Source: Macrostomum hystrix (taxonomy: Eukaryota > Animalia > Platyhelminthes). From it: DNA of 64,000 bases. Every line of letters starts with the position of its first letter. Positions within the stretch are counted from its first letter, which is position 1. The stretch spans positions 26,164,001 to 26,228,000 of the forward strand of contig CATNEN010000038.1 in the NCBI GenBank assembly GCA_950097015.1, read 5' to 3'. The notes beneath the pieces were generated by a model. It made no database searches and was not told where the DNA came from. It saw only the letters and a program-made list of their open reading frames with translations. The translations under genes were made by a program, and so were the position numbers. Shown piece by piece: positions 51,486 through 59,700 of this stretch.

Positions 51486-52079
51486 TTTGCCACTAGTCAA
51501 GCTTGATATAATATTGAAACTAATTTTGCAACTAGCTAAATAAGCAGCTCCATACTTCCATAAAAAGCTAAATCGGCGCGGTTGCCATTGGAAACGGTAA
51601 ACAAAGACAAAGCCATTGGCTAGAAAGGAAATTAAGCCTATAGCCATTGGCTTCAATGAATAGGCTTGATTAGCATTGTCGCATCTAATAAATCATTGCT
51701 AATACAAGTAGCCAGATTTCAGATTCCGCGTGCTGCACAATGTTCGCAGTATAAGCAAAGTACCTATTTATAATGGAAACGCTGTGTCAACTGTCAGAAT
51801 TGGGTGGGAAAGCACACTCAGTTATTCATCTCTGAGCAAACAAAACTTTGAGCCACTCTATATTGAAGCATCATCAAATACTACTCAACAAACCGATGCC
51901 TAACTGCATGACAAATTCACTACTTACTGAATAGTAGACCTAATTTACTCGTAATACTGATTTCAAACATTTCTATAACTTGATATAAACTTTACTTTGA
52001 ACTTTACTATTCGTAGGATAGCATTTAAAGTGTAAGGTAAGGAATAATGGGATATAAAAATGTGAGATCTTGAGTGCCA

Positions 52080-53415
52080 GAATGGGACTTGGAGTAGGAG
52101 AATGGGATCTGGAGAAGGAGAATGGAATCTGGAGTACTAGAATGAGATCTGGAGTACTAGAATGGGATCTGGAGTACTAGAATGGGATCTGGAGTACTGG
52201 AATGGGATCTGGAGTCCTGGAATGGGATCAGGAGTACTGGAATGGGATCTGGAGTTCTGGAATGGGATCTGGATTACTAGAATGGGATCTGGAGTACTAT
52301 AATGGAATTTGGAGTAAAAGAATGGAATCTGGAGTACTGGAATGGAATCTGGATTACTAGAATGGGATCTGGAGTACTATAATGGGATCTGGAGTACTGG
52401 AATGGGATCTGGATTACTAGAATGGGATCTGGAATACTAGAATGGGATCTGGAGTACTGGAATGGGATCTGGATTACTAGAATGGGATCTGGAATACTGG
52501 AATGGGATCTGGAGTACTGGAATGGGATCTGGATTACTAGAATGGGATCTGGAATACTAGAATGGGATCTGGAGTACTGGAATGGGATCTGGAGTACTGG
52601 AATGGGATCTTGATTACTAGAATGGGATCTGGATTACTAGAATGGGATCTGGAATACTAGAATGGGATCTGGAGTACTGGAATGGGATCTGGATTACTAG
52701 AATGGGATCTGGAATACTAGAATGGGATCTGGAGTACTGGAATGGGATCTGGATTACTAGAATGGGATCTGGAATACTAGAATGGGATCTGGAGTACTGG
52801 AATGGGATCTGGAGTACTGGAATGGGATCTTGATTACTAGAATGGGATCTGGAGTACTATAACGGGATCTGGATTACTAGAATGGGATCTGGAGTACTGG
52901 AATGGGATCTGGAGTACTGGAATGGGATCTTGATTACTAGAATGGGATCTGGAGTACTGGAATGGGATCTGGAGTACTGGAATGGGATCTGGAGTACTGG
53001 AATGGGATCAGGAGTACTGGAATGGGATCTGGAGTTCTGGAATGGGATCTGGATTACTAGAATGGGATCTGGAGTACTATAATGGAATTTGGAGTAAAAG
53101 AATGGGATCTGGATTACTAGAATGGGATCTGGAATACTAGAATAGGATCTGGAGTACTGGAATGGGATCTGGAGTACTGGAATGGGATCTTGATTACTAG
53201 AATGGGATCTGGAGTACTGGAATGGGATCTGGAGTACTGGAATGGGATCTGGATTACTAGAATGGGATCTGGAATACTAGAATGGGATCTGGAGCTCTGG
53301 AATGGGATCTGGATTACTAGAATGGGATCTGGAGTTCTGGAATGGGATCTGGATTACTAGAATGGGATCTGGATTACTAGAATGGGATCTGGAATACTAG
53401 AATGGGATCTGGACT
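52080..53415. repeat. 20-bp minisatellite (AATGGGATCTGGAGTACTGG)n
   Basis: Direct inspection. Confidence 0.96.
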
Positions 53416-53742
53416 ACATGAATGGCGTGAAAAGCAGACTATAATTTAAATAATCTAAGTATTTGCTTTACAATTGCTACAGTTGGGTCAGCGGAATGAG
53501 TCCAAATTTCCGCGGAATTCTGTGTGAAAGCGTCCCCTGCTTGCTCTTCTCGGATTGGTGGGTGTCGGGCCAATAAACCGAGGGGAGGGGTTTTCGATGT
53601 CACTTGGGATTCCCCATCCTTGCACGCAGCAATTAATTTTCTACCTGGAATCTAGTGCTTGCACCTGGACAGCAATCGAAATAATTTTGAAAATTGATGA
53701 GAACAGCTTCGCCATAAACACGATTAGTTAGAATAAGAGAAA

Positions 53743-54950
53743 ATGAGCCGCCGCTCATCAAGACAACCGACCATTTGGTTGCTAGTACTTTTTGACGCAG
53801 ATGGTCTAGTAGATTCTATTGAATTTAAGCAGACAGTGCCTAAAGTTGGAGAGCGAATAAACATAAACTACTATGGAGACGAACAGCTTTTCGAAGTCTT
53901 AGCTGTGTCAGGTGAGCTAAAGCTTCATATCTGCATACGCTACTCAACTCACTAATGCGTTCAATAATTCAGTCTTTCTTTTCATTTTCTCATTTTCTCT
54001 ACCTTTTCCTGCCGAGCGAAGAAACCAACATCTCCGTTCCTGCCGGAATGGTCAGCAGGGCTGACCATAGACACACTCATTTTTTCAAAGCAGGCAACAT
54101 CACAAGTCCTTTCCTGCACTTTTTTATCGGCAGCAACGGAATACAAGTTAGGCAGGTTAAGGTTAATGGGCGGCCCTCGCCTACCCCGCTGTGTCAGCTT
54201 CGACCACCCTCTTTCTCTCTCTCTCTCTCCAAAATCCTCTCTTCCACTCTTTCGTCTTTCCTCTATACCACTAACTGACTCTAAATTGTAGTACAGTTCA
54301 GATATTGCAATGTAAAATTTTTGTTCTTCTTCAGATGACAAGGCCATTGTTCGGCAAGCCGACTATGACTTTAACAAAAGCTCACGGTTGAAGGCCATCG
54401 AAGAAGAAAAAAAGTGCAGAGAAGAACAACACGCACCTTCGACTGGCGGCTTCCTTGATGTGCATGTACATGCTCACCAACCTACTGTTCCCAACAAGGT
54501 GCACCAAGCCGCTCCTTCCACTATTCCACCCAATACTCTGAAGAGAAAGGCATCGTCTTCTTTAACAGTGGCGAGTGAAATTCTTAAGAAATCAAAGGCA
54601 CAGAAGACTGCCCCTGCTTCAGTTATCAGCCACGCGATGCCCCCTACAGAAGCTAATCAGCAGGAAGCGGCTGCCAACGCAGCCATTCGAGATCCGGCTC
54701 TGACTGAGACAGTCAGCTCAATCTCCGAGTCATCATTAACCAGAGTGCTAGGAATCAACGTGCGGATGGAAAGAAGGCATTCCCGAAGCACATCTTTGAC
54801 GTTGTTCTTGAGGTCACGAGCAGGCATTTTCAAGGCGTATCACGAGAGCTGGTTGTCGGCGCAATCAACGAGGAAACAAGGAAGCTGCTCAGCGGGGTGC
54901 GCAACTGTCACATCAAAAGAAAGTGCTGCTACTGCAAAATGCGATCCTAA
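53743..54950 (+). CDS. Transposon-borne second gene, spliced; putative SH3-like N-terminal domain and BEN-like C-terminal domain, frameshifted near 54760
   Basis: Exon 53743-53911 (donor CAG|GTGAG) joins in frame to exon 2 from 54335 (acceptor TTCTTCTTCAG) into ORF 54388. The shifted frame gives ADGKKAFPKHIFDVVLEVTSRHFQGVSRELVVGAINEETRKLL, with a stop at 54948-54950. Confidence 0.6.
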
Positions 54951-54968
54951 CTCATTCCTGTGCATGGT

Positions 54969-55439
54969 TTATTCAAGCGCATAAGCGCAAGTGAAAATGG
55001 CGTCATGAAACTGATCACCGGTTTCAAGCGTCGCCAAGCTCCACAGGCATCTGACAGCCTGATTCTTGGCCTTGATTAGCTGGCAATACTGAGTGGTCGT
55101 CTTGACCCACCCTAGAATGCGCCGAATCTTCTTCACTGTGGAGAGGCTGAGACTCAGGTTAAATTTCACCTTCACTTGGTTGCGGAGATTTCGAGCCGAA
55201 ATTTTTCCTTCAGTCTGTTGGATCATGTTGTCAATGAACACCGCATGCCGCAGCGCCCAAAGTCGGCAAGGCTTTCTTCGATTGTCAGCCTTCCGCAAGC
55301 AACTGAAAAGCACTCTCTTGACTGTTTTTGGCAAAATGCTTAATGCTTCCGAAATGGACTTCACACTCTGCTTCCTCTCAAAATAGAGCTTTAAAATTTC
55401 TGCCTTCTGACTATCTGTGACATGGCAGCCTCTTTTCAT
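54969..55439 (-). pseudogene. Truncated Tc1-like transposase (DNA-binding region; ends just before the first catalytic Asp)
   Basis: HTH (SVKSISEALSILPKTVKRVL), SLSTVKKIRRILGW, YCQLIKAKNQAVRCLW...DQFHDAIFT, then breaks off where DE is expected. Confidence 0.85.
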
Positions 55440-56269
55440 AGCTAGAGTAACAATAAAAGACTATTTAATAATACAGCAATTACACTTGGAAAGTTGAATA
55501 GGGATATCGGTGTCTGGTTATAGTGAGCATTCACTATATACATGTAGCTCAAAGCAAAGAGAGTAGTATGCTGATGACATTTTGAGGGCAACCCTCAAAA
55601 GTTTCCCCCGCGGGCTCAGCCAATAGGAACACATTTCACACAATTTTCCACGGAATTCCGCGGCCATTCCGCGGAAATTTGGACTCATTCCGTTGACCCA
55701 ACAACTGTAATAGCTTGAATTAAACAGACTGATTAGGCCGTTAATATATAGGCAACAAATTAACAATACATTAGATTACACACAGTAAGAGTCAGATCTT
55801 ACACATTGTATTGATTAATTTAAATAAATATTTAAGTTAAGTATTCTATAGACAAAATAGGTGAGAAAATATTATTAGTACATCGTAAACTAATAAAAAT
55901 TATCTTGACAAAAAGTGATTTCAGAATGTGACTCTACTCATGCAAGTAGACTGGATAAATTTTGAAAATAAATCATTATTATTATTTAAAGCAATCATAA
56001 AAGCGGAGACTGAATAATAAAACAGTAGTTTAGGTCGATAAATAGATAATTATGAAGCCGGAAGTTAAATTTAGGCCTTACAAAGTGCTTAGAAATTTTA
56101 ACACAGCGCGTGGTTGGTTCATTCAGTTTACTTTAATTTGGTGTAAAGTGGGGTTGAAATAATCAATCTGAATTATTATTTCTGTACACTGAATACTAAA
56201 TATAAATTAAAATCAAAATTTATACCAAAGCTTTGAGGCGAACCTATGGTCTTAAAGACGTTGACGCTT

Positions 56270-56452
56270 GCGTGGGTGGCGGGTTTGAAGTGCGCAACTG
56301 GGTCACGTGATGTTTGCGTGGCTGGCGAGGGTTGAAGGCGCAACTGGGTCACGTGATGTTTGCGTGGCTGGCGGGGGTTGAAGTGCGCAACTGCGTCACG
56401 TGATGTATGCGTGGCTGGCGGACGCTGAATTGTGCAACTACGTGATATTTGC
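56270..56452. repeat. GC-rich repeat of about 46-47 bp, 4 units, containing GTCACGTGA
   Basis: CGTGGCTGGCGGGGGTTGAAGTGCGCAACTGGGTCACGTGATGTTTG. Confidence 0.85.
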
Positions 56453-56718: not shown

Positions 56719-59700
56719 TTACTTTCGCTTCTTTAGCTCTTCGAATCGGCGTGTTAGATCGTCGAAATCGACGTCCTCGCTGGCACCACCAGCCGCGCCG
56801 GCTGCAGGATCGTTGCCATGTGGTTGCTGGGGTGGCGGCGGCTGCTGGTAGCTATTGGCCGGGCTATTTGGCACAGCCGGCAGGTCGGGCAGAGTGAACG
56901 CGCCAGGTGGAGGCCCGGACTTATCGTTGACAACAGGCGGCGGCATTTGCTGATAAGGTGGCGGCTGGACACCTATTTCGCAAAAGTTCAATGAGATGTA
57001 AGTTAAAATTGGCTTGCCTTTTACAAACTTTTACGCTTAGATCTTTACACCCAGTACACCAGTCCATTACTGTGCACCCCCAGCACCCAAGTCTTTTACT
57101 GCGCCGCCCCAACACCCACCACCCCAGTCCTTTACTGCGCAGCCACAAAACCCACCACCCCAGTCCTTTACTGCGCAGCCCCAACACCCACCCCAGTCTT
57201 TCACCGCGAAACCTTAACACCCACACCCACCACCTCAGTCCTTTAATGCGCAGCCCCAACAACCACCACCCCAGTCTTTTACCGCGGAGCCTTAACACCC
57301 ACACCCACCACCTCAGACCTTTACTGCGCAGCCTCAACACCCACCACCCCAGTGTTCTACCGCGGAGCCTTAACACCTACACCCACCACCTCAGTCCTTT
57401 TCTGCGCAGCCTCAACACCCACCAACCCGGTGTTTCACAACGGAGCCTTAACACCCACCACCCCAGTCTTTCATCGCGAAGCCCCTGCACCCACCAGCCC
57501 TGTCTTTCAGTCTTTCACTGTGCAGCCACCACCATAAAATGCAAGTCAGACAGGTCACAGCAGTCAAAAGAATTGCGTAGCGTAGGTAAAGTATCAAAAA
57601 AAACCCAACGTTGAAAAAAGCTTTGACTAAAAAAGCTTTGCCTCTCTCTCCCATCATCTTCCCTATTCTCTGCCATAATCTTCCCTACTCTCTCCCATCC
57701 TCTTCCACACTCTCTGCCATCATCTTCCCTACTCTCTCCCATCATCTTCCCCACTCTCTGCCATCATCTTCCCTACTCCCTCCCATCATCTTCCTCACTC
57801 TCTCCCATCATCTTCCTCACTCTCTCCCATCATCTTCCTCACTCTCTCCCATCATCTTCCTCACTCTCTCCCATCATCTTCCTCACTCTCTCCATTATCT
57901 TTCTCACTCTCTCCCATCATCTTCCCTACTCTCTCCATCATCTTCCCTACTCTCTCCATCATCTTCCCTACTCTCTCCATCATCTTCCCTACTCTCTCCC
58001 ATCATCTTCCTCACTCTCTCCCATCATCTTCCTCACTCTCTCCATCATCTTCCCTACTCTCTCCATCATCTTCCCTACTCTCTCCATCATCTTCCCTACT
58101 CTCTCCATCATCTTCCCTACTCTCTCCATCATCTTCCCTACTCTCTCCATCATCTTCCTCACTCTCTCCCATCATCTTCCTCACTCTCTCCCATCATCTT
58201 CCTCACTCTCTCCCATCATCTTCCTCACTCTCTCCATCATCTTCCTCACTCTCTCCATCATCTTCCTCACTCTCTCCCATCATTTTCCACACTCTCTCCC
58301 ATTATCTCCGCTACTCTCTCCAACATCTTCCTTACTATCTCCCATCATCTTTCTCACTCTCTCCCATCATCTTCCCACTCTCTCCCATCATCTTCCCCTA
58401 TCTCTCTCAGACTCACTCTCTGAATCCCTTCTCTCCCCATTGTATTCGATTGTCTCCAGCATTTCATGCTCAGTTTAGAATCTAGCGTACCTCCAGGCGC
58501 AGAAGCTCCGCCGGTGGCGGCCGCCGCAGCCGTCGGTAAGCCAGCGAATGAGCCAGTAGAAACGGGGCTAGGCGCATAGCCGGGTTGCGGAAAGCCAGGC
58601 TGCATAGGGTAAGGCGCGGCTGGCACTGACGGCAAGCCGCCGCCGCCGCCTCCACCGCTACCGCCACTTCCACCGCCGGCGCCGCCACCTTTGCGACCGC
58701 CAAATCCAGCGTCGATGTCAATCAAATTGGCACCGCTTTCTTCTCCTTCGCGCATTACGTCCGGATCCGGAGTGAACGGCACGTTGAACGATTTGGCAAT
58801 CTCTACTAGATACTTTTCTACCAGAAGCTTCGGTGGAGCCTGCACTCCTAACTTATGGATGACCTTCTCGCTCACATTGTTCATCTGGTTGGATAGGCAG
58901 GCCTGGGCGAACTCTTTGCTGTACTTTAGTGTCAACTGTTCGGCTACAGATTTGAATTCGGCTACGTCAGATTGTAAGCGAGGTGTCACCCAGATTAGGG
59001 TGGCAACGGCCTCTTCTAGGCCAGGGTCGAGCTCTCTGGGGATAATCATGTGAAAGTTATATTTGCAAACACTTACAATTCACAATTCCTCTCCATTTAT
59101 TATATTAAAAAATTATTCAAGTGTTTAAAAGGAATTATAGAAGAAGAGTTAAATAAAGAATAACTTACTATTAGGTACTGGTGATATTTTTATAGATAAT
59201 AATCACAATTGAAAAGATAATATACATATGAAAATACTAAGAAATAAAAATAGTTAACCCAGAAAATTTAGATCTCTTGAGTGCTATTAAACCCAGAAAA
59301 AAGAAGATTTTTATCTGCCTTAAAAACTAACTTCAAAGAAGTCTATAAAGAAAGTTGTGATTTTTTACATTTAATGCATGAAGCTTTAGTTTTAGTTAAT
59401 TTGTTAGCAATAATAGTTTTAAGTACTTACTGCATTAACAAAAGGGTTTAAAACATACATGCGCAACCTCCCAAATCTTAGCCGGCCGTGCGACTTAGTT
59501 TTTGCTCTCATTTGCGACTTAGTTCATTTCATTGCTCTATTTACGACTTAGTTTGCTCTCATTTGCTCTCTTTTTCTCTCCCCTTTTTCCTTTTCTTCAC
59601 GCCTTCCTTTTTTGTCCCTTGGTCCCCCCTTTGATTTTTTTGCGCTTGGTCAATTGGTTTTTGCGACTTACCTTGCTTGGCCCTCGTTTCACCCGGCCGG

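Follow-up and report, generated by a model that had tools for sequence, protein, structure and literature searches.

A doubly deleted copy of a probable two-gene Tc1-like transposon in Macrostomum hystrix, with a second gene predicted to encode a BEN-fold protein

Tc1/mariner elements are textbook one-gene transposons, and BEN domains are widespread in animal chromatin and transcription factors. A second gene is known from other transposase superfamilies: PIF/Harbinger elements encode a transposase and a Myb-like DNA-binding protein, and CACTA/En-Spm elements encode TnpD and TnpA. Here we describe an element in a stretch of 64,000 nucleotides (the window) from the flatworm Macrostomum hystrix (assembly GCA_950097015.1, contig CATNEN010000038.1, positions 26,164,001 to 26,228,000). 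The element occupies positions 53480-55707 of the window, has a length of 2,228 bp and carries the remnants of a transposase gene and of a second, convergent gene, which we call ORF2 (open reading frame 2). It is probably a dead copy, with two internal deletions, of a rare and young two-gene Tc1-like cut-and-paste transposon. In the literature searched, no description of a Tc1-like transposase paired with a BEN protein was found. If this lineage carries a spliced second gene with a BEN-fold product, it would represent a new architecture for the Tc1/mariner superfamily. Such a two-gene element would also offer a concrete, testable case for links between BEN domains and mobile DNA.

The nearest described group is TLEWI, composed of bivalve Tc1-like elements with introns, which have few copies and 3-6 exons (Puzakov et al., bioRxiv 10.1101/656579). 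As predicted for the element described here, the TLEWI transposase is split by GT-AG spliceosomal introns, the last two exons hold the second D and the E of the catalytic triad, and the copy number is very low. Sizes are also similar, with 322-378 amino acids (aa) and 81-89 aa between the first and second D (D1-D2) in TLEWI, and 335 aa with a D1-D2 distance of 85 here. TLEWI elements come from bivalves, and the nearest named homologue of our transposase is from the mussel Mytilus coruscus. On the contrary, TLEWI elements have a DD36E signature, the motif YQDNDSKH and mostly no terminal inverted repeats (TIRs) or target-site duplications (TSDs), whereas the element here has DD35E, ADNDPKH, clean 39-nt TIRs and TA duplications. 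A second gene is undescribed in TLEWI and present here. By signature, motif and TIR/TSD, the element is not a TLEWI member.

Another small Tc1/mariner lineage found in marine invertebrates is L31, whose members in bivalves and corals are said to have, like the element here, an extra ORF2, with no known function. L31 is defined as DD37E, in contrast to DD35E here, and falls outside the Tc1 family (10.1101/656579; PMC7325037). Additional ORFs, including one for a zinc-finger protein, are also found in the TBE and Tec elements of ciliates, which are relatives of Tc1/mariner (PMC7325037). These differ from our element in being ciliate-specific, with another architecture and cargo and no BEN domain.

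The window copy is clearly delimited (Table 1). The TIR arms at 53482-53518 and 55666-55702 match over 37 nt with 97% complementarity, and the inverted ends measure 37-39 nt (CAGTTGGG...). The tips read CAGTTG at 53480 and CAACTG at 55702-55707, and the CAGTTG tip is Tc1-like. Near the right tip the window copy has three added bases, CCCAACAACTG versus CCCAACTG in the other copies. The borders TA...TA are also seen at both other two-ended copies of the family. As these borders occur in mutually unrelated flanks, we regard the three two-ended copies as real transposition products. The right flank of the window insertion is unique, and no paralogue of its empty site was found. Three copies, this one included, hold remains of both genes within a single unit delimited by TIRs and TA duplications. 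ORF2 is therefore cargo of the element and no neighbouring host gene. An earlier note, written from the letters of the window, had described TIRs of about 40 bp starting with CAGTTG, a TA duplication, and a Tc1/mariner-type element with a convergent second gene. The ends and the duplication were found at those coordinates, and both genes were found within the one unit.

Two internal deletions have removed most of the coding sequence. In ORF2, a loss of 688 bp took the coiled coil, the proline-rich 10-aa repeats and the first half of the C-terminal domain. Since 688 equals 3 x 229 + 1, the reading frame shifts at this point. The frameshift that had been placed near 54760 is thus a deletion at 54751-54755, as comparison with the copy L023 reveals. 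The larger loss lies between 54984 and 54990 and amounts to about 2.1 kb. It covers the 3' flank of ORF2, the intergenic DNA, transposase exons 2-4 and the end of transposase exon 1. It sets in right at the first D of the catalytic triad (FT|DE), and the entire catalytic domain is gone. What is left is a minus-strand ORF at 54969..55439, reading MKRGCHV...GDQFHDAIFT followed by junk, in agreement with the truncation after ...HDAIFT reported earlier. When a DNA transposon is excised and the gap is repaired faultily, the junctions usually show microhomology and filler. With GGAA microhomology at one junction and filler at the other, the two deletions look like products of such repair, and this origin is likely. 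This doubly deleted form was seen in no other copy of the family. The window copy is a dead, non-autonomous deletion derivative from which neither protein can be made. Only its ends remain, so it could be moved at most in trans.

A DNA search found the family at six places in the 220-Mb assembly, with 95-99% identity among copies. We read the full element by overlaying these natural copies, and the protein searches and models treated each exon separately. An open ORF2 exon 2 occurs only in L023 (C2, plus strand) and an open transposase only in L024. Overlaid in this way, the full element has about 5.0 kb and two convergent genes, starting about 265 bp inside their own ends (263 nt for ORF2 and 268 nt for the transposase in the window copy). 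The predicted product of ORF2 (56 codons in exon 1 and 434 in exon 2, the latter unbroken in L023) starts with a beta-rich N-terminal part and continues with a linker that is basic and disordered. A predicted coiled coil, about ten proline-rich units of 10 residues (ETPLPVTQRH), a C-terminal domain and a cysteine cluster follow in this order.

Table 1. Coordinates of the window element, of the transposase exons in copy L024 and of the copies in the assembly (window positions unless another sequence is named).
Feature	Position	Strand	Remarks
Left TA target-site duplication	53478..53479		
Left TIR	53480..53518	+	CAGTTGGGTCAGCGG...; palindromic decamer TTCCGCGGAA inside, at 53508-53517
ORF2 5' region	53519..53742	+	Presumed promoter and 5' untranslated region (putative function); ATG 263 nt from left end
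ORF2 exon 1	53743..53911	+	56 codons + 1 base; beta-rich, no recognisable fold
Predicted ORF2 intron, phase 1	53912..54334	+	423 nt; from sequence signals: GTGAGC ... ACTAAC ... pyrimidine tract ... CAG
ORF2 exon 2, proximal part	54335..54754	+	Basic/disordered linker, to ...SSLTRVLG
Junction of 688-bp deletion	54751..54755		Versus copy L023; GGAA microhomology
ORF2 exon 2, distal part	54755..54950	+	Second half of predicted BEN fold, cysteine cluster, stop TAA at 54948-54950; out of frame with proximal part
Filler GCGCAA at junction of ~2.1-kb deletion	54985..54990		5-6 nt; versus copy L024
Transposase exon 1 remnant	54990..55439	-	Putative helix-turn-helix (HTH) DNA-binding part; ends ...FHDAIFT before first catalytic D
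Transposase 5' region	55440..55665	-	ATG 268 nt from right end; tandem decamers TTCCACGGAA / TTCCGCGGCC
Right TIR	55666..55707	-	3 extra bases near tip in window copy
Right TA target-site duplication	55708..55709		
Transposase exon 1, L024	L024 3408..2857	-	184 aa
Transposase exon 2, L024	L024 2732..2577	-	52 aa
Transposase exon 3, L024	L024 2304..2194	-	37 aa
Transposase exon 4, L024	L024 1805..1620	-	62 aa, then stop
Window copy	C38		Both ends; two internal deletions
Copy L024	L024 351-3673 = C1:962850-966172		Both ends; complete transposase region; ORF2 lacks 984 bp
Third two-ended copy	C1:3964954-3977712		Both ends; centre occupied by ~10 kb of foreign DNA
Three one-ended copies	C2, C2, C9	+ and - (C2)	Left end only; within segmental duplication >9.4 kb, 99.6% identity

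The C-terminal domain of ORF2, of about 110 residues, very probably has a BEN fold, judging from its structural model. AlphaFold (AF2) was applied to the intact domain of L023 (147 aa), giving a mean predicted local distance difference test (pLDDT) of 68.7 and a predicted template modelling score (pTM) of 0.65 from a 4-row alignment. When the model was compared with 48,161 Protein Data Bank (PDB) representatives by VIA-align, the top five matches were all BEN domains: BEND3 BD1 (Z 8.7), NACC1 (7.8), Bsg25A (7.4), BEND6 (7.1) and BANP (6.7). These matches cover 83-99 residues, which corresponds to whole domains, and the next match has Z 5.1. The BEN fold is compact and all-helical, and in the matched chains it comprises roughly 90-130 residues. 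Foldseek gave weak E-values, with BANP, BEND3 and Insv as the only coherent matches (template modelling scores 0.5-0.63); in the viral library it matched bracovirus BEN proteins. The nearest Atlas cluster, by protein-language-model features, carries PF10523 (0.89, with 173 shared features). The earlier note had proposed that the C-terminal segment represents the latter half of a BEN domain, and this is supported at the level of the fold. The stretch GKKAFPKHIFDVV...INEETRKLL, quoted with that proposal, corresponds to the last two helices. Overall, we have high confidence in the anatomy of the element and in the BEN fold.

The fold predicted for the C-terminal domain is that of cellular BEN proteins (BEND3, BANP, BEND6, NACC1, Drosophila Insv and Bsg25A/Elba). 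Cellular BEN proteins such as BEND5/6 and Insv also have a coiled coil before a C-terminal BEN domain. In contrast, ORF2 has no detectable sequence similarity to them, is transposon-encoded and ends in an extra cysteine cluster. This cluster (L023 2470-2509) is conserved at the C-termini of two of the homologues described below, P0001 and P0002, with NCHIKRKCCYC, YCHYFRLCVFC and NCNSCTFC. Possibly it forms a small knuckle that binds metal.

Relatives of ORF2 are extremely few. Of the 125 matches from a full HMMER scan against 1.84 billion representatives, all but three hit the proline-rich repeats. These three are the true homologues: P0001, a 333-aa fragment from a Joint Genome Institute (JGI) metagenome (E 7e-48) that spans the coiled coil and the C-terminal domain; P0002 (PAA48096.1), with 186 aa, from Macrostomum lignano; and P0005, with 142 aa, also from a JGI metagenome. 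Residues 74-193 of the intact exon 2 align with P0001. Within the C-terminal domain the homologues share 36-47% identity, with 19 invariant alignment columns, and this conservation across distant sequences suggests long-term constraint. A profile search of 5.8 billion proteins for further homologues returned the known M. lignano protein only. In the genome, matches to ORF2, including those of a profile search, are confined to copies of the element, which argues that it holds no host donor gene.

Several observations weigh against reading the locus as the remains of a two-gene transposon with a BEN-fold partner protein. Transcription of ORF2 is presumed, and its splicing is predicted from sequence signals and indirect arguments. 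No Pfam BEN match was obtained up to E = 10 for the intact domain and its three homologues, nor was there one for the window pieces or the intact ORF2, and a PDB sequence profile search gave no BEN match, only a chance match to dynein. The structural model is of moderate confidence, built on four aligned rows, and Z values of 7-9 are unexceptional for helical models in general. No relatives of ORF2 were found in two metagenome scans and one viral-contig scan. The differences between copies are few and look neutral, with no sign of current constraint, because most are nonsynonymous: between the window copy and L023 there are 9 nonsynonymous and 2 synonymous, with a divergence of about 1% in exon and intron alike. 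The decamers at the ends of the element could equally be binding sites of the transposase. The assembly holds no complete copy of the family, and the window copy alone, as a dead derivative, carries small biological weight. A search of the whole genome with PF10523 was also negative; control genomes were equally blank, making it uninformative. Neutral decay is expected for inserted copies, and is uninformative on constraint in an active lineage.

We slightly favour ORF2 as a long-term partner gene of the transposon lineage over a one-off capture. In a capture, a single Tc1-like element would have taken a BEN-like gene from the host or another transposon, through recombination or gap repair, and all copies would descend from that chimera, with ORF2 having no role in transposition. 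This is rather unlikely, yet it accommodates the near-identity of the six copies, which points to one recent ancestor, and the apparent neutrality of their substitutions. It also fits with a transposase that has a putative HTH DNA-binding part of its own and should need no partner. Nevertheless, a donor or paralogue outside the element is missing from the genome, even by profile search, and the extreme rarity and scatter of ORF2 homologues would be more expected for a mobile gene than for a host gene. ORF2 also has its own start close to a TIR, 263 nt from the left end, mirroring the transposase, which starts 268 nt from the right end.

A second alternative questions the gene structure itself, and bears on how the N-terminal part of ORF2 is read. 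The predicted intron has the donor CAG|GTGAGC at 53911/53912, an ACTAAC branch-like motif, a long pyrimidine tract and the acceptor CAG| at 54334/54335, in phase 1. A phase-1 GT-AG intron at 53912-54334 had already been noticed, and its canonical donor and acceptor and its compatible phase are confirmed in the sequence. The exon-2 frame has a stop 7 codons before the acceptor and then runs without ATG for about 100 codons, while homology to P0001 begins upstream of the first in-frame methionine. These last two observations support the predicted intron. Exon 1, modelled alone, gave four strands at low confidence (pLDDT 62.8), with fibronectin type III (Fn3) domains as the best structural match (Z 2.5). 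Neither an SH3 nor a Tudor chain was among its structural matches, and exon 1 alone had no match in the Atlas, so the SH3-like N-terminus suggested before is unsupported. It is conceivable, though improbable, that ORF2 is no real spliced gene, that exon 1 is a chance ORF and that the protein starts at an internal methionine of exon 2 or in some other exon. Consistent with this, exon 1 has no homologue, family or fold match, and its differences from L023 are mostly nonsynonymous (4 of 5 in L024, 2 of 3 in the window copy). Against this stand the perfect AG|GTGAG donor, the ACTAAC motif and the pyrimidine tract, together with a CAG acceptor of compatible phase. The frame that opens 7 codons ahead of this acceptor, with no ATG where the P0001 homology already runs, also speaks against it.

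The transposase is a Tc1-like DD35E enzyme by its motifs. In L024 it is encoded by four open exons with a total of 335 codons, separated by three predicted introns, all in phase 0 and each with the donor GTAAGC (starting at L024 2856, 2576 and 2193, minus strand). The triad reads FTDE ... DNDPKH ... SPDLMSPVE|NMW, with 85 residues between the first and second D and 35 between the second D and the E, and the mussel protein described next has identical spacings. The M. coruscus homologue, CAC5383315.1, is annotated as "Tc1-like transposase DDE domain-containing protein" (PF13358) and matches exons 1, 2 and 3 with E 2e-17, 1e-19 and 3e-11. Exons 1-4 are collinear with its residues 52-152, 153-202, 205-241 and 243-251, and the junction of exons 1 and 2 coincides exactly with 152|153. 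In the metagenomic homologues P0126 and P0127, the sequence turns to junk directly behind KHPLKV, at the same intron position. The KHPLK|V intron thus looks old and common to several organisms. Pfam matches were sub-threshold: DDE_3 for exon 3 alone (E 0.029), and for the N-terminal part only HTH families (Sigma70_r4, HTH_32, HTH_23 and HTH_Tnp_1).

The earlier note had pointed to two-ORF elements of L31 type, and a second ORF is indeed present here. Membership in the L31 family is nevertheless very improbable, given a D-to-E spacing of 35 rather than 37 here and in the Mytilus homologue, the Tc1-like motifs DNDPKH and SPDL..PVE-NMW, the CAGTTG tip, and the placement of L31 outside the Tc1 family (PMC7325037).

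The earlier note had suggested an accessory role for ORF2, for example in anti-silencing or targeting. As for the possible function of a partner gene, the ORF2 protein would be a sequence-specific DNA-binding partner, dimerising through its coiled coil in the manner of cellular BEN proteins. It would act on the element's own DNA, with the TTCCGCGGAA palindromes at both ends as the preferred candidate sites, either assembling the ends with the transposase or setting the transcription or chromatin state of the element. Several cellular BEN proteins read short CG-rich palindromes. Allowing up to one mismatch, TTCCGCGGAA has three matches in the 64-kb window, all in the ends of the element: one in the left TIR (53508-53517) and two on the right, at 55646-55655 (one mismatch), and at 55667-55676 (exact), just inside the right TIR. 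A variant with two mismatches (55656-55665) lies between the right-hand matches, making three tandem units. By analogy, binding of the ORF2 protein to these palindromes is possible, and we propose it only tentatively. The functional model is that of PIF/Harbinger and CACTA/En-Spm, where the DNA-binding protein of the second gene reads subterminal repeats and helps to recruit or assemble the transposase. Those systems differ in transposase superfamily and in DNA-binding fold (Myb/SANT, TnpA). In addition, a Tc1-like transposase has its own paired-like DNA-binding domain, so that it is less evident why it should need a partner.

A broader reading, more speculative still, is that BEN-fold proteins are a recurrent partner of cut-and-paste transposons, and that this lineage keeps ORF2 across species to read TTCCGCGGAA for end recognition or anti-silencing. 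If that were true, BEN would be a transposon-borne DNA-reading module and a possible source of cellular BEN genes.

The surroundings of the copies contain other repetitive sequences. The one-ended copies L023 (C2:9326500-9336499), L026 (C9:1766000-1775999) and L027 (C2:9389000-9398999) lie close to contig ends, and the two on C2 are mutually inverted and about 70 kb apart. In L023, the transposon fragment stops at about 2744, adjoining TTGCCGACCCCTG, which resembles a hAT-type terminus. Beside this copy, at L023 3441-4175 (minus strand), is an ORF of 244 codons that by eye is F-box/LRR-like (LRR, leucine-rich repeat); a word-indexed search of 5.8 billion proteins gave no homologue of it at E <= 1e-5. 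Directly to the right of the copy at C1:0.96 Mb, at L024 3605-3997 (minus strand), an ORF resembles by eye the zinc-finger region of a retroelement integrase (...HDVESFVSQCAGCSQL...).

The insert in the third two-ended copy (C1:3966291-3976416; L025 1792-10000 and L033 1-1917) contains a pair of direct repeats, each of about 420 bp, that lie 3.3 kb apart. It also holds an ORF pair of long interspersed nuclear element (LINE) type, with an apurinic/apyrimidinic (APE) endonuclease and a reverse transcriptase, followed by RNase H.

In the window, a minisatellite of 1.36 kb (52066-53425) ends 55 bp short of the left end of the transposon. It is composed of 68 copies of the 20-bp unit GATCTGGAGTACTAGAATGG with 89% matches and a strong GC skew. 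To the right of the element we found tandem arrays at 56268-56443 (46-47-bp unit), 57075-57507 (C-rich, 36/78-bp unit) and 57644-58396, the last with 35 copies of a 22-bp unit.

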